NCBI GenBank assembly: GCA_965644295.1
Contig: CBFFRP010000508.1
Location: 1-9,812, forward strand
Length of the DNA: 9,812 nucleotides
Direction of reading: 5' to 3'
Origin: Paraphysomonas bandaiensis
Lineage: Eukaryota; Protista; Chrysophyceae
Positions 1-9,812 of the stretch are shown here, piece by piece. The notes under the pieces were generated by a model. That model saw only the letters and a list, made by a program, of their open reading frames with translations. It was not told the origin of the DNA and did not search any database. Within the stretch, counting starts at the first letter, position 1; every line of letters starts with the position of its first letter. Both the position numbers and the translations under genes were made by a program.

Positions 1-39
1 ATCATCAGCAAAGGAGCAGATATCACTATAGGAGACAGA
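1..39 (+). CDS. ANK exon 1 (partial) IISKGADITIGDR
   Basis: Followed by GTAAGT at 40-45; same 3' end as exon 10. Confidence 0.85.
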
Positions 40-3000
40 GTAAGTAACCCCCCTATACATACATATACAGTGATATACATACATATACAGTGATATACAT
101 GCATATACAGTGATATACATACATATACAATGATATACATACATATACAGTGATATACATACATATACAGTGATATACATACATATACAGTGATATACGT
201 ACATATACAGTGATATACATACATATACAGTGCTAAGAGGGCTCATGTGATGTCATTGTTATTGTTTTATAGGATGGTTGGACAGCTCTTCACTATGCTG
301 CTCGTAAAGGTCACAGAGATACATGTGAATATCTCATCAGCAAAGGAGCAGATATCACTATAAGAGACACTGTAAGTAACCCCCCTATACATACATATAC
401 AGTGATATACATGCATATACAGTGATATACATACATATACAGTGATATACATACATATACAGTGATATACATACATACATACATATACAGTGATATACAT
501 GCATATACAGTGCTAAGAGGGCTCATGTGATGTCATTGTTGTTGGTTTATAGAGGGGTTCTACAGCTCTTCTCTTGGCTGCCTCTGGAGGTCACAGAGAT
601 ACATGTGAATACCTCATCAGCAAAGGAGCAGATATCACTATAGGAGGCAGAGTAAGTAACCCCCTATACATACATATACAGTGATATACATACATATACA
701 GTGATATACATACATATACAGTGATATACATACATATACAGTGCTAAGAGGGCTCATGTGATGTCATTGTTGTTGGTTTATAGAGGGGTTCTACAGCTCT
801 TCACTTGGCTGCCTCTGGAGGTCACAGAGATACATGTGAATATCTCATCAGCAAAGGAGCAGATATCACTATAGGAGGCAGAGTAAGTAACCCCCCTATA
901 CATACATATACAGTGATATACATACATATACAGTGATATACATACATATACAGTGATATACATGCATATACAGTGCTAAGAGGGCTCATGTGATGTCATT
1001 GTTATTGTTTTATAGGATGGTTGGACAGCTCTTCACTATGCTGCTCGTAAAGGTCACAGAGATACATGTGAATATCTCATCAGCGAAGGAGCAGATATCA
1101 CTATAAGAGGCAGAGTAAGTAACCCCCCTATACATACATATACAGTGATATACATGCATATACAGTGATATACATACATATACAGTGATATACATGCATA
1201 TACAGTGATATACATACATATACAGTGATATACATACATATACAGTGATATACATACATATACAGTGATATACGTACATATACAGTGATATACATACATA
1301 TACAGTGCTAAGATATTTTTTATAGGATGGTTCTACAGCTCTTCACGAGGCTGCCTCTGGAGGTCACAGAGATACATGTGAATATCTCATCAGCGAAGGA
1401 GCAGATATCACTATAAGAGACGATGTAAGTAACCCCTCTATACATACATATACAGTGATATACATACATATACAGTGATATACATACATATACAGTGATA
1501 TACATGCATATACAGTGATATACATACATATACAGTGATATACATACATATACAGTGATATACATACATATACAGTGATATACGTACATATACAGTGATA
1601 TACATACATATACAGTGCTAAGAGGGCTCATGTGATGTCATTGTTATTGTTTTATAGGATGGTTGGACAGCTCTTCACTATGCTGCTCGTAAAGGTCACA
1701 GAGATACATGTGAATATCTCATCAGCAAAGGAGCAGATATCACTATAAGAGACACTGTAAGTAACCCCCCTATACATACATATACAGTGATATACATACA
1801 TATACAGTGCTAAGATATTTTTTATAGGATGGTTCTACAGCTCTTCACGAGGCTGCCTCTGGAGGTCACAGAGATACATGTGAATATCTCATCAGCGAAG
1901 GAGCAGATATCACTATAAGAGACGATGTAAGTAACCCCTCCATACATACATATACAGTGATATACATACATATACAGTGATATACATACATATACAGTGA
2001 TATACATGCATATACAGTGATATACATACATATACAGTGCTAAGATATTTTTTATAGGATGGTTCTACAGCTCTTCACTATGCTGCCTCTGGAGGTCACA
2101 GAGATACATGTGAATATCTCATCAGCGAAGGAGCAGATATCACTATAAGAACCAATGTAAGTAACCCCCCTATACATACATATACAGTGATATACATGCA
2201 TATACAGTGCTAAGAGGGCTCATGTGATGTTATTGTTGTTGTTTTATAGGATGGTTCTACAGCTCTTCACAAGGCTGCCTCTGGAGGTCACAGAGATACA
2301 TGTGAATATCTCATCAGCAAAGGAGCAGATATCACTATAGGAGACAGAGTAAGTAACCCCCCTATACATACATATACAGTGATATACATACATATACAGT
2401 GATATACATGCATATACAGTGATATACATACATATACAATGATATACATACATATACAGTGATATACATACATATACAGTGATATACATACATATACAGT
2501 GATATACGTACATATACAGTGATATACATACATATACAGTGCTAAGAGGGCTCATGTGATGTCATTGTTATTGTTTTATAGGATGGTTGGACAGCTCTTC
2601 ACTATGCTGCTCGTAAAGGTCACAGAGATACATGTGAATATCTCATCAGCAAAGGAGCAGATATCACTATAAGAGACACTGTAAGTAACCCCCCTATACA
2701 TACATATACAGTGATATACATGCATATACAGTGATATACATACATATACAGTGATATACATACATATACAGTGATATACATACATACATACATATACAGT
2801 GATATACATGCATATACAGTGCTAAGAGGGCTCATGTGATGTCATTGTTGTTGGTTTATAGAGGGGTTCTACAGCTCTTCTCTTGGCTGCCTCTGGAGGT
2901 CACAGAGATACATGTGAATACCTCATCAGCAAAGGAGCAGATATCACTATAGGAGGCAGAGTAAGTAACCCCCCTATACATACATATACAGTGATATACA

Positions 3001-6000
3001 TACATATACAGTGATATACATACATATACAGTGATATACATACATATACAGTGCTAAGAGGGCTCATGTGATGTCATTGTTGTTGGTTTATAGAGGGGTT
3101 CTACAGCTCTTCACTTGGCTGCCTCTGGAGGTCACAGAGATACATGTGAATATCTCATCAGCAAAGGAGCAGATATCACTATAGGAGGCAGAGTAAGTAA
3201 CCCCCCTATACATACATATACAGTGATATACATACATATACAGTGATATACATACATATACAGTGATATACATGCATATACAGTGCTAAGAGGGCTCATG
3301 TGATGTCATTGTTATTGTTTTATAGGATGGTTGGACAGCTCTTCACTATGCTGCTCGTAAAGGTCACAGAGATACATGTGAATATCTCATCAGCGAAGGA
3401 GCAGATATCACTATAAGAGGCAGAGTAAGTAACCCCCCTATACATACATATACAGTGATATACATGCATATACAGTGATATACATACATATACAGTGATA
3501 TACATGCATATACAGTGATATACATACATATACAGTGATATACATACATATACAGTGATATACATACATATACAGTGATATACATACATATACAGTGCTA
3601 AGATATTTTTTATAGGATGGTTCTACAGGTCTTCACGAGGCTGCCTCTGGAGGTCACAGAGATACATGTGAATATCTCATCAGCGAAGGAGCAGATATCA
3701 CTATAAGAGACGATGTAAGTAACCCCTCTATACATACATATACAGTGATATACATACATATACAGTAATATACATACATATACAGTGATATACATGCATA
3801 TACAGTGATATACATACATATACAGTGCTAAGATATTTTTTATAGGATGGTTCTACAGCTCTTCACTATGCTGCCTCTGGAGGTCACAGAGATACATGTG
3901 AATATCTCATCAGCGAAGGAGCAGATATCACTATAAGAACCAATGTAAGTAACCCCCCTATACATACATATACAGTGATATACATGCATATACAGTGCTA
4001 AGAGGGCTCATGTGATGTTATTGTTGTTGTTTTATAGGATGGTTCTACAGCTCTTCACAAGGCTGCCTCTAATGGTCACAGAGATACATGTGAATATCTC
4101 ATCAGCGAAGGAGCAGATATCACTATAAGAGACGATGTAAGTAACCCCTCTATACATACATATACAGTGATATACATACATATACAGTGATATACGTACA
4201 TATACAGTGATATACATACATATACAGTGCTAAGAGGGCTCATGTGATGTCATTGTTATTGTTTTATAGGATGGTTGGACAGCTCTTCACTATGCTGCTC
4301 GTAAAGGTCACAGAGATACATGTGAATATCTCATCAGCAAAGGAGCAGATATCACTATAAGAGACACTGTAAGTAACCCCCCTATACGTACATATACAGT
4401 GATATACATACATATACAGTGATATACATACATATACAGTGATATACATACATATACAGTGATATACATACATATACAGTGATATACATACATATACAGT
4501 TATATACATACATATACAGTGCTAAGAAGGCTCATGTGATGTTATTGTTGTTGTTTTATAGGATGGTTCTACAGCTCTTCGCAAAGCTGCCTCTAATGGT
4601 CACAGAGATACATGTGAATATCTCATCAGCGAAGGAGCAGATATCACTATAGGAGACAATGTAAGTAACCCCCCTATACATGCATATACAGTGATATACA
4701 TACATATACAGTGATATACATACATATACAGTGATATACATGCATATACAGTGATATACATACATATACAGTGCTAAGATATTTTTTATAGGATGGTTCT
4801 ACAGGTCTTCACGAGGCTGCCTCTGGAGGTCACAGAGATACATGTGAATATCTCATCAGCGAAGGAGCAGATATCACTATAAGAGACGATGTAAGTAACC
4901 CCTCTATACATACATATACAGTGATATACATACATATACAGTGATATACATACATATACAGTAATATACATACATATACAGTGATATACATGCATATACA
5001 GTGATATACATACATATACAGTGCTAAGATATTTTTTATAGGATGGTTCTACAGCTCTTCACTATGCTGCCTCTGGAGGTCACAGAGATACATGTGAATA
5101 TCTCATCAGCGAAGGAGCAGATATCACTATAAGAGACACTGTAAGTAACCCCCCTATACATACATATACAGTGATATACATACATATACAGTGATATACA
5201 TACATATACATTGATATACATACATATACAGTGATATACATACATATACAGTGATATACATACATATACAGTGATATACATACATATACAGTAATATACA
5301 TACATATACAGTGATATACATGCATATACAGTGATATACATACATATACAGTGCTAAGATATTTTTTATAGGATGGTTCTACAGCTCTTCACTATGCTGC
5401 CTCTGGAGGTCACAGAGATACATGTGAATATCTCATCAGCGAAGGAGCAGATATCACTATAAGAGACACTGTAAGTAACCCCCCTATACATACATATACA
5501 GTGATATACATACATATACAGTGATATACATACATATACATTGATATACATACATATACAGTGATATACATACATATACAGTGATATACATACATATACA
5601 GTGATATACATACATATACAGTGATATACATACATATACAGTGATATACGTACATATACAGTGATATACATACATATACAGTGCTAAGAGGGCTCATGTG
5701 ATGTCATTGTTATTGTTTTATAGGATGGTTCTACAGCTCTTCACGAGGCTGCCTCTAATGGTCACAGAGATACATGTGAATATCTCATCAGCGAAGGAGC
5801 AGATATCACTATAAGAGACGATGTAAGTAACCCCTCTATACATACATATACAGTGATATACATACATATACAGTGATATACATACATATACAGTGATATA
5901 CATGCATATACAGTGATATACATACATATACAATGATATACATACATATACAGTGATATACATACATATACAGTGATATACATACATATACAGTGATATA

Positions 6001-8298
6001 CGTACATATACAGTGATATACATACATATACAGTGCTAAGAGGGCTCATGTGATGTCATTGTTATTGTTTTATAGGATGGTTGGACAGCTCTTCACTATG
6101 CTGCTCGTAAAGGTCACAGAGATACATGTGAATATCTCATCAGCAAAGGAGCAGATATCACTATAAGAGACACTGTAAGTAACCCCCCTATACATACATA
6201 TACAGTGATATACATGCATATACAGTGATATACATGCATATACAGTGATATACATACATATACAGTGATATACATGCATATACAGTGATATACATACATA
6301 TACAGTGATATACATACATATACAGTGCTAAGAGGGCTCATGTGATGTTATTGTTGTTGTTTTATAGGATGGTTCTACAGCTCTTCGCAAGGCTGCCTCT
6401 AATGGTCACAGAGATACATGTGAATATCTCATCAGCGAAGGAGCAGATATCACTATAGGAGACAATGTAAGTAACCCCCCTATACATGCATATACAGTGA
6501 TATACATACATATACAGTGATATACATACATATACAGTGATATACGTACATATACAGTGATATACATACATATACAGTGCTAAGATATTTTTTATAGGAT
6601 GGTTCTACAGCTCTTCACGAGGCTGCCTCTGGAGGTCACAGAGATACATGTGAATATCTCATCAGCGAAGGAGCAGATATCACTATAGGAGACGATGTAA
6701 GTAACCCCTCTATACATACATATACAGTGATATACATGCATATACAGTGATATACATACATATACAGTGCTAAGATATTTTGTATAGGATGGTTCTACAG
6801 CTCTTCACTATGCTGCCTCTGGAGGTCACAGAGATACCTGTGAATATCTCATCAGCGAAGGAGCAGATATCACTATAAGAGACACTGTAAGTAACCCCCC
6901 TATACATACATATACAGTGATATACATACATATACAGTGCTCAGAGGGCTCATGTGATGTCATTGTTATTGTTTTATAGGATGGTTGGACAGCTCTTCAC
7001 TATGCTGCTCGTAAAGGTCACAGAGATACATGTGAATATCTCATCAGCAAAGGAGCAGATATCACTATAAGAGACACTGTAAGTAACCCCCCTATACATA
7101 CATATACAGTGATATACATACATATACAGTGCTAAGAGGGCTCATGTGATGTCATTGGTGTTGTTTTATAGGATGGTTCTACAGCTCTTCACTATGCTGC
7201 CTATAATGGTCACAGAGATACATGTGAATATCTCATCAGCGAAGGAGCAGATATCACTATAAGAGACACTGTAAGTAACCCCCCTATACATACATATACA
7301 GTGATATACATACTTATACAGTGATATACATACATATACAGTGATATACATACATATACAGTGATATACATACATATACAGTGCTAAGAGGGCTCATGTG
7401 ATGTCATTGTTGTTGTTTTATAGGATGGTTGGACAGCTCTTCACTATGCTGCTCGTAAAGGTCACAGAGATACATGTGAATATCTCATCAGCAAAGGAGC
7501 AGATATCACTATAAGAACCAATGTAAGTAACCCCCCTATACATACATATACAGTGATATACATACATATACAGTGCTAAGAGGGCTCATGTGATGTTATT
7601 GTTGTTGTTTTATAGGATGGTTCTACAGCTCTTCACTATGCTGCCTATAATGGTCACAGAGATACATGTGAATATCTCATCAGCGAAGGAGCAGATATCA
7701 CTATAAGAGGCAGAGTAAGTAACCCCCCTATACATACATATACAGTGATATACATACTTATACAGTGATATACATACATATACAGTGATATACATACATA
7801 TACAGTGATATACATACATATACAGTGATATACATACATATACAGTGATATACATACATATACAGTGCTAAGAGGGCTCATGTGATGTTATTGTTGTTGT
7901 TTTATAGGATGGTTGGACAGCTCTTCACAAGGCTGCCTCTGGAGGTCACAGAGATACATGTGAATATCTCATCAGCAAAGGAGCAGATCTCACTATAAGA
8001 AACAATGTAAGTAACCCCCCTATACATACATATACAGTGATATACATACATATACAGTGATATACATACATATACAGTGATATACATACATATACAGTGA
8101 TATACATACATATACAGTGATATACATACATATACAGTGATATACATACATATACAGTGCTAAGAGGGCTCATGTGATGTTATTGTTGTTGTTTTATAGG
8201 ATGGTTCTACAGCTCTTCACAAGGCTGCCTCTGGAGGTCACAGAGATACATGTGAATATCTCATCAGCAAAGGAGCAGATGTCACTATAAGAAACAAT
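1..8298 (+). CDS. Multi-exon ankyrin-repeat protein gene (partial, 5' end outside window; 33 exons, one ANK repeat per 99-bp exon; about 1069 aa visible)
   Basis: Every satellite unit holds a 99-bp segment between a T-rich TATAG acceptor and a GTAAGT donor. Manual translation gives G-x-TALH-x-AA-xx-GH...YLIS-x-GAD, the canonical ankyrin consensus (GxTPLHxAAxxGHxxxVxxLLxxGADxN). No stop or frameshift in any of the 32 complete exons, whereas intron lengths vary freely. Confidence 0.93.
273..371 (+). CDS. ANK exon 2 DGWTALHYAARKGHRDTCEYLISKGADITIRDT
   Basis: AG at 271-272, GTAAGT at 372; 99 bp. Confidence 0.9.
553..651 (+). CDS. ANK exon 3 RGSTALLLAASGGHRDTCEYLISKGADITIGGR
   Basis: AG/GT bounded, 99 bp. 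Confidence 0.9.
784..882 (+). CDS. ANK exon 4 RGSTALHLAASGGHRDTCEYLISKGADITIGGR
   Basis: AG/GT bounded, 99 bp. Confidence 0.9.
1016..1114 (+). CDS. ANK exon 5 DGWTALHYAARKGHRDTCEYLISEGADITIRGR
   Basis: AG/GT bounded, 99 bp. Confidence 0.9.
1326..1424 (+). CDS. ANK exon 6 DGSTALHEAASGGHRDTCEYLISEGADITIRDD
   Basis: AG/GT bounded, 99 bp. Confidence 0.9.
1658..1756 (+). CDS. ANK exon 7 DGWTALHYAARKGHRDTCEYLISKGADITIRDT
   Basis: AG/GT bounded, 99 bp. Confidence 0.9.
1828..1926 (+). CDS. ANK exon 8 DGSTALHEAASGGHRDTCEYLISEGADITIRDD
   Basis: AG/GT bounded, 99 bp. Confidence 0.9.
2058..2156 (+). CDS. ANK exon 9 DGSTALHYAASGGHRDTCEYLISEGADITIRTN
   Basis: AG/GT bounded, 99 bp. Confidence 0.9.
2250..2348 (+). 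CDS. ANK exon 10 DGSTALHKAASGGHRDTCEYLISKGADITIGDR
   Basis: AG/GT bounded, 99 bp. Confidence 0.9.
2582..2680 (+). CDS. ANK exon 11 DGWTALHYAARKGHRDTCEYLISKGADITIRDT
   Basis: AG/GT bounded, 99 bp. Confidence 0.9.
2862..2960 (+). CDS. ANK exon 12 RGSTALLLAASGGHRDTCEYLISKGADITIGGR
   Basis: AG/GT bounded, 99 bp. Confidence 0.9.
3094..3192 (+). CDS. ANK exon 13 RGSTALHLAASGGHRDTCEYLISKGADITIGGR
   Basis: AG/GT bounded, 99 bp. Confidence 0.9.
3326..3424 (+). CDS. ANK exon 14 DGWTALHYAARKGHRDTCEYLISEGADITIRGR
   Basis: AG/GT bounded, 99 bp. Confidence 0.9.
3616..3714 (+). CDS. ANK exon 15 DGSTGLHEAASGGHRDTCEYLISEGADITIRDD
   Basis: AG/GT bounded, 99 bp. Confidence 0.9.
3846..3944 (+). CDS. ANK exon 16 DGSTALHYAASGGHRDTCEYLISEGADITIRTN
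   Basis: AG/GT bounded, 99 bp. Confidence 0.9.
4038..4136 (+). CDS. ANK exon 17 DGSTALHKAASNGHRDTCEYLISEGADITIRDD
   Basis: AG/GT bounded, 99 bp. Confidence 0.9.
4270..4368 (+). CDS. ANK exon 18 DGWTALHYAARKGHRDTCEYLISKGADITIRDT
   Basis: AG/GT bounded, 99 bp. Confidence 0.9.
4562..4660 (+). CDS. ANK exon 19 DGSTALRKAASNGHRDTCEYLISEGADITIGDN
   Basis: AG/GT bounded, 99 bp. Confidence 0.9.
4792..4890 (+). CDS. ANK exon 20 DGSTGLHEAASGGHRDTCEYLISEGADITIRDD
   Basis: AG/GT bounded, 99 bp. Confidence 0.9.
5042..5140 (+). CDS. ANK exon 21 DGSTALHYAASGGHRDTCEYLISEGADITIRDT
   Basis: AG/GT bounded, 99 bp. Confidence 0.9.
5372..5470 (+). CDS. ANK exon 22 DGSTALHYAASGGHRDTCEYLISEGADITIRDT
   Basis: AG/GT bounded, 99 bp. 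Confidence 0.9.
5724..5822 (+). CDS. ANK exon 23 DGSTALHEAASNGHRDTCEYLISEGADITIRDD
   Basis: AG/GT bounded, 99 bp. Confidence 0.9.
6076..6174 (+). CDS. ANK exon 24 DGWTALHYAARKGHRDTCEYLISKGADITIRDT
   Basis: AG/GT bounded, 99 bp. Confidence 0.9.
6368..6466 (+). CDS. ANK exon 25 DGSTALRKAASNGHRDTCEYLISEGADITIGDN
   Basis: AG/GT bounded, 99 bp. Confidence 0.9.
6598..6696 (+). CDS. ANK exon 26 DGSTALHEAASGGHRDTCEYLISEGADITIGDD
   Basis: AG/GT bounded, 99 bp. Confidence 0.9.
6788..6886 (+). CDS. ANK exon 27 DGSTALHYAASGGHRDTCEYLISEGADITIRDT
   Basis: AG/GT bounded, 99 bp; synonymous ACA>ACC at codon 17; variant acceptor TTTTGTATAG. Confidence 0.9.
6980..7078 (+). CDS. ANK exon 28 DGWTALHYAARKGHRDTCEYLISKGADITIRDT
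   Basis: AG/GT bounded, 99 bp. Confidence 0.9.
7172..7270 (+). CDS. ANK exon 29 DGSTALHYAAYNGHRDTCEYLISEGADITIRDT
   Basis: AG/GT bounded, 99 bp. Confidence 0.9.
7424..7522 (+). CDS. ANK exon 30 DGWTALHYAARKGHRDTCEYLISKGADITIRTN
   Basis: AG/GT bounded, 99 bp. Confidence 0.9.
7616..7714 (+). CDS. ANK exon 31 DGSTALHYAAYNGHRDTCEYLISEGADITIRGR
   Basis: AG/GT bounded, 99 bp. Confidence 0.9.
7908..8006 (+). CDS. ANK exon 32 DGWTALHKAASGGHRDTCEYLISKGADLTIRNN
   Basis: AG/GT bounded, 99 bp. Confidence 0.9.
8200..8298 (+). CDS. ANK exon 33 (last visible) DGSTALHKAASGGHRDTCEYLISKGADVTIRNN
   Basis: AG/GT bounded, 99 bp; donor at 8299 has no recognisable downstream exon in the window. Confidence 0.88.
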
Positions 8299-8362
8299 GT
8301 AAGTAACCCCCCTATACATACATATACAGTGATATACATACATACATACATATACATACCAT

Positions 8363-8392
8363 CCTAACCCTAACTATTCGATTAGGGTTAGG
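8363..8392. repeat. Inverted telomeric junction CCTAACCCTAA-ctattcga-TTAGGGTTAGG (11-bp inverted repeat, 8-nt spacer)
   Basis: 8363-8373 is the reverse complement of 8382-8392. Confidence 0.85.
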
Positions 8393-9800
8393 GTTAGGGT
8401 TAGGGTTAGGGTTAGGGTTAGGGTTAGGGTTAGGGTTAGGGTTAGGGTTAGGGTTAGGGTTAGGGTTAGGGTTAGGGTTAGGGTTAGGGTTAGGGTTAGG
8501 GTTAGGGTTAGGGTTAGGGTTAGGGTTAGGGTTAGGGTTAGGGTTAGGGTTAGGGTTAGGGTTAGGGTTAGGGTTAGGGTTAGGGTTAGGGTTAGGGTTA
8601 GGGTTAGGGTTAGGGTTAGGGTTAGGGTTAGGGTTAGGGTTAGGGTTAGGGTTAGGGTTAGGGTTAGGGTTAGGGTTAGGGTTAGGGTTAGGGTTAGGGT
8701 TAGGGTTAGGGTTAGGGTTAGGGTTAGGGTTAGGGTTAGGGTTAGGGTTAGGGTTAGGGTTAGGGTTAGGGTTAGGGTTAGGGTTAGGGTTAGGGTTAGG
8801 GTTAGGGTTAGGGTTAGGGTTAGGGTTAGGGTTAGGGTTAGGGTTAGGGTTAGGGTTAGGGTTAGGGTTAGGGTTAGGGTTAGGGTTAGGGTTAGGGTTA
8901 GGGTTAGGGTTAGGGTTAGGGTTAGGGTTAGGGTTAGGGTTAGGGTTAGGGTTAGGGTTAGGGTTAGGGTTAGGGTTAGGGTTAGGGTTAGGGTTAGGGT
9001 TAGGGTTAGGGTTAGGGTTAGGGTTAGGGTTAGGGTTAGGGTTAGGGTTAGGGTTAGGGTTAGGGTTAGGGTTAGGGTTAGGGTTAGGGTTAGGGTTAGG
9101 GTTAGGGTTAGGGTTAGGGTTAGGGTTAGGGTTAGGGTTAGGGTTAGGGTTAGGGTTAGGGTTAGGGTTAGGGTTAGGGTTAGGGTTAGGGTTAGGGTTA
9201 GGGTTAGGGTTAGGGTTAGGGTTAGGGTTAGGGTTAGGGTTAGGGTTAGGGTTAGGGTTAGGGTTAGGGTTAGGGTTAGGGTTAGGGTTAGGGTTAGGGT
9301 TAGGGTTAGGGTTAGGGTTAGGGTTAGGGTTAGGGTTAGGGTTAGGGTTAGGGTTAGGGTTAGGGTTAGGGTTAGGGTTAGGGTTAGGGTTAGGGTTAGG
9401 GTTAGGGTTAGGGTTAGGGTTAGGGTTAGGGTTAGGGTTAGGGTTAGGGTTAGGGTTAGGGTTAGGGTTAGGGTTAGGGTTAGGGTTAGGGTTAGGGTTA
9501 GGGTTAGGGTTAGGGTTAGGGTTAGGGTTAGGGTTAGGGTTAGGGTTAGGGTTAGGGTTAGGGTTAGGGTTAGGGTTAGGGTTAGGGTTAGGGTTAGGGT
9601 TAGGGTTAGGGTTAGGGTTAGGGTTAGGGTTAGGGTTAGGGTTAGGGTTAGGGTTAGGGTTAGGGTTAGGGTTAGGGTTAGGGTTAGGGTTAGGGTTAGG
9701 GTTAGGGTTAGGGTTAGGGTTAGGGTTAGGGTTAGGGTTAGGGTTAGGGTTAGGGTTAGGGTTAGGGTTAGGGTTAGGGTTAGGGTTAGGGTTAGGGTTA
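8382..9800 (+). repeat. Telomeric repeat array (TTAGGG)236 plus TTA
   Basis: Uninterrupted TTAGGG from 8382 to 9797 (1416 bp = 236 units), G-rich strand running 5'->3' to the window end as expected for a right chromosome end. TTAGGG is the telomere motif of many metazoans, fungi and protists, so it does not identify the taxon. Confidence 0.97.
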
Positions 9801-9812
9801 AACAATACATAT

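Follow-up and report, generated by a model that had tools for sequence, protein, structure and literature searches.

We analyzed a stretch of 9,812 nucleotides from the chrysophyte Paraphysomonas bandaiensis (NCBI GenBank assembly GCA_965644295.1, contig CBFFRP010000508.1, positions 1 to 9,812 of the forward strand), which we call the window and in which an array of near-identical ankyrin-encoding exons runs head to tail up to a telomere. All features lie on the plus strand unless stated otherwise. A preliminary description, made from the letters alone, had reported 32 complete 99-bp segments flanked by TATAG and GTAAGT, all open and in the same phase, each encoding a 33-residue ankyrin repeat. 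Indeed, an exact pattern scan for TATAG, 99 nucleotides and GTAAGT returned exactly 32 segments, the first at 273–371 and the last at 8200–8298. The donor GTAAGTAAC occurs 33 times; the additional copy sits behind a partial cassette of 39 nucleotides at positions 1–39, which contributes the last 13 codons of a repeat (..ISKGADITIGDR) in phase before its GTAAGT. The array therefore totals at least 33 ankyrin cassettes, 32 full and one partial. Each full cassette translates into 33 residues without a stop and in a common phase 0, and there is no insertion or deletion across the 3168 exon bases of the 32 cassettes.

For Pfam and homology searches, each cassette exon was used as a single query. 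The Pfam ankyrin profile (Ank, PF00023) was matched by all 32 at E ≤ 0.001, so that the profile check called for by the preliminary description gives a match from every exon singly. The six cassettes scored in detail reached 31.6–46.8 bits against a gathering cut-off of 21.1, and their alignments ran from profile positions 1–2 to positions 30–33 of 33. Because single exons give this near-full coverage, the exon borders coincide with the borders of the Pfam ankyrin repeat. The majority consensus of the cassettes is DGSTALHYAASGGHRDTCEYLISEGADITIRDx; mean column identity is 89% over 1056 residues (32 × 33), and 21 of the 33 columns are invariant. By sequence, the best relatives of solved structure are designed ankyrin repeat proteins (DARPins), ankyrin-R and ankyrin-B, NOMPC, TRPA1 and a fungal 'Pfs, NACHT and Ankyrin' domain (6ne1_B). 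These matches show that the predicted products of the cassettes are genuine ankyrin repeats, one per symmetric phase-0 exon.

One cassette searched with phmmer against 1.8 billion representatives gave 165,552 matches, ranked by repeat number, none of which contained the GHRDTCEYL core. The best window had 19 of 33 residues in common with the cassette, and the 33-residue query was swamped by generic giant ankyrin proteins, which makes this search uninformative on close relatives. Metagenome scans with the invariant exon core, either exact or degenerate at silent sites, found 0 matches each, and Rfam gave no match on the array.

The cassettes are separated by 32 introns of 71–253 nucleotides, which lie between positions 40 and 8199. 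All follow one plan: a fixed 14-nucleotide start, GTAAGTAACCCC(C/T)C, then 2 to 10 copies of a 20-nucleotide minisatellite unit, then an 18- or 40-nucleotide 3' part that opens with CTAAG, a possible branch site, and closes with a T-rich tract and TATAG. They consist of flanks and minisatellite only, each donor pairs with an intact or partial cassette, and the splice signals are perfect at 32 of 32 borders. Intron length shifts in steps of 20 because the unit copy number ranges from 2 to 10; as had been claimed, all length variation falls between the cassettes. The units total 171, and 104 have the main form; among the units counted, seven variants were distinguished. Those bearing G at position 7 of the unit, G at 5 or A at 17 recur in set orders.

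The preliminary description had also warned that such an array would be missed by finders of open reading frames (ORFs) and hidden by repeat maskers. The warning is fair: a six-frame list contains no plus-strand ORF of at least 60 amino acids in the array, and Tandem Repeats Finder (TRF) classes the whole region as tandem repeat. On the minus strand, forty ORFs of 60–103 amino acids lie between 267 and 8173, and gene callers may report them as spurious proteins. They exist because the reverse complement of the minisatellite has no stops in some frames; we rejected them as genes and regard them as read-through of stop-free minisatellite.

The openness of the cassettes is weak evidence when taken alone, because the copies are young and few changes produce stops (only 3.7% of single-base changes would do so). 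We therefore give the distribution of the differences among them. Nucleotide variation affects 26 of the 99 columns, with the three codon positions contributing almost equally (9, 9 and 8), and 21 of these 26 columns fall within nine codons: 1, 3, 8, 11, 12, 24, 31, 32 and 33. Whole-codon swaps are frequent in these nine, for example GAT/AGG, TGG/TCT and CGT-AAA/TCT-GGA. In the translated repeat, 12 of the 33 columns vary, with 91% of the amino-acid diversity falling at these nine codons. Nonsynonymous nucleotide diversity (piN) is 0.358 in the nine hypervariable codons. In the 24 framework codons it is 0.0088, with a synonymous diversity (piS) of 0.0345 and hence a piN/piS of 0.26. Diversity (pi) in the flanking intron sequence is 0.029 for the 14-nucleotide 5' flank, 0.039 for the 40-nucleotide long form of the 3' flank and 0.011 for its 18-nucleotide short form. 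Read descriptively and not as a formal test of selection, because the cassettes are related by descent and the choice of codons was in part made with the data in view, these pi values mean that the scaffold has changed about four times more slowly than silent sites, and that the nine codons are roughly tenfold more diverse than silent sites or linked non-coding sequence.

Alignments with DARPins fix the register of the repeat: the internal repeats of DARPins vary at cassette positions 3, 11, 12, 24 and 31. The classic DARPin library, that of Binz and colleagues from 2003, reportedly randomised positions 2, 3, 5, 13, 14 and 33, which we take to be cassette codons 33, 1, 3, 11, 12 and 31, respectively. 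All six of these codons are polymorphic in the array (hypergeometric P = 8e-4). As a sequence pattern, the data show scaffold codons under apparent purifying selection beside nine hypervariable codons of the predicted binding face, and they indicate that selection has acted on the protein.

To describe the cassettes individually, we typed each by a head (codons 1, 3, 8, 11 and 12) and a tail (codons 24 and 31–33). Nine head types and 11 tail types occur in 16 combinations among the 32 cassettes, and all four gametes are present at several pairs of sites. The head DWYRK is joined to the tail K-RDT in cassettes 1 (273–371), 6 (1658–1756), 10 (2582–2680), 17 (4270–4368), 23 (6076–6174) and 27 (6980–7078), to E-RGR in cassettes 4 (1016–1114) and 13 (3326–3424), and to K-RTN in cassette 29 (7424–7522). 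RSLSG is found only with K-GGR, in cassettes 2 (553–651), 3 (784–882), 11 (2862–2960) and 12 (3094–3192), with the change H7L in cassettes 2 and 11. DSESG accompanies E-RDD in cassettes 5 (1326–1424), 7 (1828–1926), 14 (3616–3714) and 19 (4792–4890), the last two with A5G, and E-GDD in cassette 25 (6598–6696). DSYSG is followed by E-RTN in cassettes 8 (2058–2156) and 15 (3846–3944) and by E-RDT in cassettes 20 (5042–5140), 21 (5372–5470) and 26 (6788–6886). DSKSN carries E-RDD in cassette 16 (4038–4136) and, together with H7R, E-GDN in cassettes 18 (4562–4660) and 24 (6368–6466). DSESN occurs once, with E-RDD, in cassette 22 (5724–5822), and DSYYN twice, with E-RDT in cassette 28 (7172–7270) and with E-RGR in cassette 30 (7616–7714). 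DSKSG is combined with K-GDR in cassette 9 (2250–2348) and with K-RNN in the last cassette, 32 (8200–8298); the remaining head, DWKSG, also stands before K-RNN, in cassette 31 (7908–8006).

Two details of this inventory concern the framework. The histidine of the T-x-L-H motif is replaced in four cassettes, by Leu at 553–651 and 2862–2960 and by Arg at 4562–4660 and 6368–6466; since all four are copies within duplicated blocks, these replacements represent only two events. The two end-most cassettes carry changes found nowhere else in the array, namely the head DWKSG, RNN tails and the framework changes I28L (cassette 31) and I28V (cassette 32). Such divergence is typical of repeats at the edge of a tandem array, and cassette 31 with its I28L provides a usable marker of this locus.

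The preliminary description had noted that such exons can be duplicated, deleted or reordered without a frameshift, and self-comparison revealed three recent block duplications of 0.7–1.3 kb with 98.1–99.8% identity. The longest is a 1.29-kb block of five cassettes at 2–1287, copied at 2311–3597 with one mismatch and one gap (99.8% identity). A 0.81-kb block at 4151–4962 recurs at 5957–6768 (98.5%), and the block 1771–2438 recurs at 3559–4226 (98.1%). The form of the 3' intron flank predicts the head that follows: ..ATTGTTTTATAG stands before DWYRK, ..GGTTTATAG before RSLSG, and the short form before DSESG or DSYSG. Likewise, a CCCCTC donor flank is found behind every ..DD tail. Because intron variants travel with the adjacent half of an exon, the exchanged units must begin and end either in mid-exon or in the minisatellite. 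The array has thus recently gained blocks of 3–5 cassettes, and its heads and tails have been reassorted. Both could be accounted for by unequal crossing-over or by gene conversion whose breakpoints lay in the invariant core of the exon and in the minisatellite of the intron. Such recombination would change the number of repeats and make new combinations of cassettes. As the exon junction is expected from ankyrin structure to lie in the inter-repeat loop, each new neighbor would also create a new hairpin.

We next consider whether these exons are used. Sequencing runs under four organism labels, as well as marine metagenomes, contain parts of the stretch, 16 studies in all. The comparison with reads covered positions 6780–7720 only, that is, five cassettes and four introns, with the last cassettes and the telomere junction lying outside it. 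Four of the runs were guessed to be RNA: X16 and X17 (organism C), X19 (organism A, probably the label of the source) and X20 (organism E). In X16, exon bins had 7,000–48,000 depth units and intron bins 0–400; in X17, X19 and X20 introns were mostly at zero. Over the four probable RNA runs, contigs covered exons about 100 times more deeply than introns. These runs behave as RNA, because in a DNA library the depth over the minisatellite, which is multi-copy, would be no lower than over the exons. Contigs containing intron are weak, at about 1% of exon depth, and could be pre-mRNA or trace DNA. Matches at 99% identity or more numbered 55, 46, 13 and 7 contigs in the four runs, a count to be read with the fact that the cassettes are common to sister arrays; contigs of these runs cover the exons of cassettes 26, 27 and 28.

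The splice sites predicted by the preliminary description are in use in RNA of the family. One contig each of X16 and X17 joins the donor of cassette 29 (7522/7523) directly to the first base of cassette 30 (7616), skipping exactly the 93-nucleotide GT..AG intron at 7523–7615. Many more joints connect a cassette end to a cassette start with few foreign letters between them, and at loose ends other repeat tails (GADINIQDK.., GADINIRNN..) abut exon starts; the joints and loose ends with foreign tails are contigs of paralogous arrays. At one loose end in X20, behind position 7272, a cassette end continues into ..GKTPVDSAEE.., apparently a closing repeat of a distinct kind and possibly the C-terminal cap (C-cap) exon that is lacking at this locus. 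The exon-limited contig cover and the exact 7522/7616 joint together imply that the cassette family is spliced as predicted: it is transcribed in at least three organism labels, with splicing at the borders that had been predicted.

The right end of the array is abrupt. Cassette 32 is followed by a normal donor and the first 64 nucleotides of a 33rd intron (8299–8362), with about 2.5 decaying minisatellite units and no acceptor reached. Next comes a 19-nucleotide junction piece (8363–8381), consisting of 11 nucleotides of inverted (C-strand) telomere repeat and then CTATTCGA at 8374–8381, an 8-mer that is unique within the window. The telomere itself, about 1.4 kb long, begins 83 nucleotides past the last cassette and occupies 8382–9800 as 236.5 perfect TTAGGG copies with the G-strand outward (TRF). 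Between cassette 32 and the telomere there is no acceptor, no terminal exon and no stop in the spliced phase; if the last intron is retained, the frame stays open for 22 codons and stops at 8365–8367. The window, which opens inside a cassette, contains no start codon or first exon, and these may lie upstream. Because the telomere cuts the last intron and the 5' end is outside the window, the locus as assembled is not a complete gene. The term 'hidden gene' used in the preliminary description was in this respect overstated.

The two extremities of the window bear on its assembly. Window base 1, an A, mismatches the C at position 2310 in the twin block of 99.8% identity, a hint that the contig starts here at an assembly break inside the array; the window is probably, on this slender sign, a whole short contig. 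At the other extremity, twelve AT-rich, non-telomeric bases (9801–9812) close the window after the TTAGGG tract. They may represent junk at a read end, leftover adapter or the beginning of sequence beyond an interstitial tract.

Two known systems offer the closest likenesses. The preliminary description had compared the locus with the ankyrin domains of fungal NOD-like receptors (NLRs), for their high internal identity, and with the shuffled leucine-rich repeat (LRR) and tetratricopeptide repeat (TPR) genes of brown algae, for their exon layout; both analogies hold, the first extending to hypervariable binding-face codons (PMC4986451; PMC3341825). In fungal NLRs, repeats of high internal conservation (HIC) are set apart by being more than 85% identical across 100 amino acids or more (Dyrka et al., 2014, PMC4986451), and the same paper places the variable, positively selected sites of HIC ankyrin (ANK) repeats on the inner helices and the hairpin/loop of the concave face. 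The HIC ANK, WD40 and TPR domains of these receptors, including Podospora het-d/het-e, resemble our array in their near-identical repeats (89% here), in having a few hypervariable positions on the concave hairpin/inner-helix face, and in the gain, loss and shuffling of units by recombination (PMC4986451; PMC12222747). The cassette profile also matches the fungal 6ne1_B domain mentioned above. The fungal genes differ in several respects: an exon-per-repeat layout with minisatellite introns is not described in the available parts of those papers, and neither NACHT nor NB-ARC is seen in our window, outside which the 5' end lies. Moreover, the host here is a stramenopile-type protist, and this copy is truncated by a telomere. 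HIC domains are further characterized by attachment to a NACHT or NB-ARC module with an N-terminal effector domain and by repeat numbers that differ between individuals; the only change of number seen here is block duplication within the array.

The exon layout, on the other hand, recalls the candidate receptors of Ectocarpus and other brown algae, LRR (ROCO) and TPR (NB-ARC) genes with one exon per repeat (Zambounis et al., 2012, PMC3341825; PMC11378527). In both, each repeat is encoded by a phase-0 exon of constant length, 72 nucleotides per LRR there and 99 nucleotides per ANK here (PMC3341825), blocks of exons are duplicated locally, and diversification of a ligand-binding solenoid has been proposed. 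The array differs from them in using ankyrin repeats and in its far higher internal identity. It also lacks the hallmark of shuffling in Ectocarpus, inactivated or reverse-strand cassettes within introns: the 33 donors here are fully accounted for by 32 full cassettes and one partial. By analogy, then, the family would work like the fungal HIC domains and be laid out like the Ectocarpus genes, with the signaling domains that define both, ROC-COR as well as NACHT and NB-ARC, not visible here. We found no paper on an ankyrin form of the exon-per-repeat hypervariable design, and none on ankyrin arrays in Paraphysomonas, in a literature coverage that is incomplete and leaves absence unproven.

Three further comparisons concern the scaffold and its chromosomal position. 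DARPins, the top solved matches, have the same design of an identical scaffold in each repeat with diversity at the same surface positions, but they are artificial and have 2–3 internal repeats between caps, whereas the array comprises 33 repeats or more and has further variable codons at 8, 24 and 32. In vertebrate ANK1, ANK2 and ANK3, according to a 1997 report by Gallagher and colleagues, most of the 24 membrane-binding repeats are single 99-nucleotide exons. This layout of one 99-nucleotide exon per ankyrin repeat is like that of the array, and ankyrin-R and ankyrin-B are among its best solved matches; but the vertebrate repeats are old, mutually divergent and fixed in number, and are not known to show either a split into hypervariable and invariant positions or concerted evolution. 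Finally, trypanosome VSG, Plasmodium var and yeast FLO/PAU genes form subtelomeric contingency families. Like them, the array belongs to a variable family of binding proteins one copy of which lies at the end of a chromosome, a place prone to ectopic recombination and breakage; it differs in showing no evidence of switching, silencing or donor use.

Overall, we consider it fairly probable that the window contains a telomere-truncated, subtelomeric member of a large, expressed and diversifying ankyrin family with one exon per repeat. This copy is probably recently cut, or a reservoir copy, rather than a complete gene. Most likely a chromosome break would have cut the gene recently and been healed with a new telomere; otherwise, a subtelomeric array in flux would be seen here. 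The copy may still be transcribed, and would be unable to make a normal capped protein. The solenoid encoded by the family could present a variable protein-binding surface with a recognition or adaptor role. Several points weigh against this picture. The 19-nucleotide junction piece at 8363–8381 is not predicted by plain telomerase healing, and the joint between array and telomere could be an assembly join. With the 5' end outside the window, neither a start codon nor a cap exon nor a partner domain is visible. The hypervariable codons were in part picked post hoc from cassettes of common ancestry, and the signature of selection may have been inherited from functional parent arrays rather than maintained here. 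Lastly, no read or contig is tied to this locus, the runs were only guessed to be RNA, and all of the RNA evidence could come from sister arrays.

The main alternatives concern the right end of the array. It is unlikely, though deserving of attention, that the telomere junction arose as a chimera of reads or of the assembly and that the real locus is internal and continues to a cap exon and a stop. Assembly is difficult in a contig of apparently only 9.8 kb made of near-identical repeats, base 1 differs from the twin block, non-telomeric bases follow the tract at 9801–9812, and the junction has its odd inverted mini-tract and CTATTCGA. However, 236 perfect copies with an outward G-strand are what is expected of a true right end, and the unique changes in the two end-most cassettes are like those of edge repeats in real arrays. 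Decidedly unlikely, in our view, is a complete working gene of unconventional form, whose transcript would stop in or before the telomere with the last intron retained, giving a long uncapped ankyrin solenoid. An in-frame stop does exist at 8365–8367 behind a 22-residue tail, all cassettes are intact, the family is expressed, and a little intron-containing RNA was seen. Yet no poly-A signal or 3' end was observed, the X20 loose end enters the different ..GKTPVDSAEE.. sequence, and the absence of a C-cap usually lowers the stability of an ankyrin stack. We think it improbable as well, and mention it as a speculative prospect, that the telomere-adjacent array is a working cassette archive or breeding ground and not just a broken gene. 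Break-prone subtelomeric DNA and recombination-prone minisatellite introns would then keep making combinations of heads, tails and neighbors, which ectopic conversion would copy into expressed ankyrin binder genes elsewhere in the genome. If true, the array would serve a protist recognition system as a generator of germline diversity, with a logic comparable to that of the VSG or var archives.

We considered two other explanations. Mixing at the RNA level, in which combinatorial exon skipping would yield many binders from one locus, is suggested by the equal-length, symmetric phase 0-0 exons, any subset of which remains in frame, and by joints in RNA contigs that skip 287–350 nucleotides. These joints, however, contain 2–11 foreign junction letters or end codons absent from this array, and contigs cannot show isoforms in a repeat. 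We consider this explanation very improbable and rejected exon skipping as unsupported; the joints are best read as contigs of paralogues placed on look-alike exons. Least credible of all, and to be given hardly any weight, is a plain non-coding subtelomeric satellite whose resemblance to protein is chance or an unselected relic. A head-to-tail array with higher-order blocks does adjoin the telomere, and openness is statistically unsurprising for young copies. But the density of variation in the binding-face codons exceeds that of the scaffold codons, the silent sites or the intron flanks by a factor of 10 to 40; there are 0 indels in 3168 exon bases while intron length varies freely; splice signals are perfect at 32 borders; and spliced RNA of the same cassettes exists.

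A truncated member of an expressed, diversifying ankyrin family, the reading we favor, would combine in one free-living marine protist two features so far described in separate systems: the layout of one exon per repeat known from brown-algal genes, and the near-identical repeats with hypervariable sites known from fungal NLRs. Protein engineers built DARPins on this scaffold. Should the family prove to bind variable targets, for instance prey, viruses or symbionts, it would add a new case of how recognition diversity arises in unicellular eukaryotes, and would offer a natural experiment on the ankyrin positions at which diversity is tolerated. Genes of this kind are hidden both when repeats are masked and when calling relies on ORFs, so the ankyrin repertoires of protists are probably under-counted. 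The copy described here shows the process at a chromosome end, with very recent block duplications and an intron cut and capped by a telomere.

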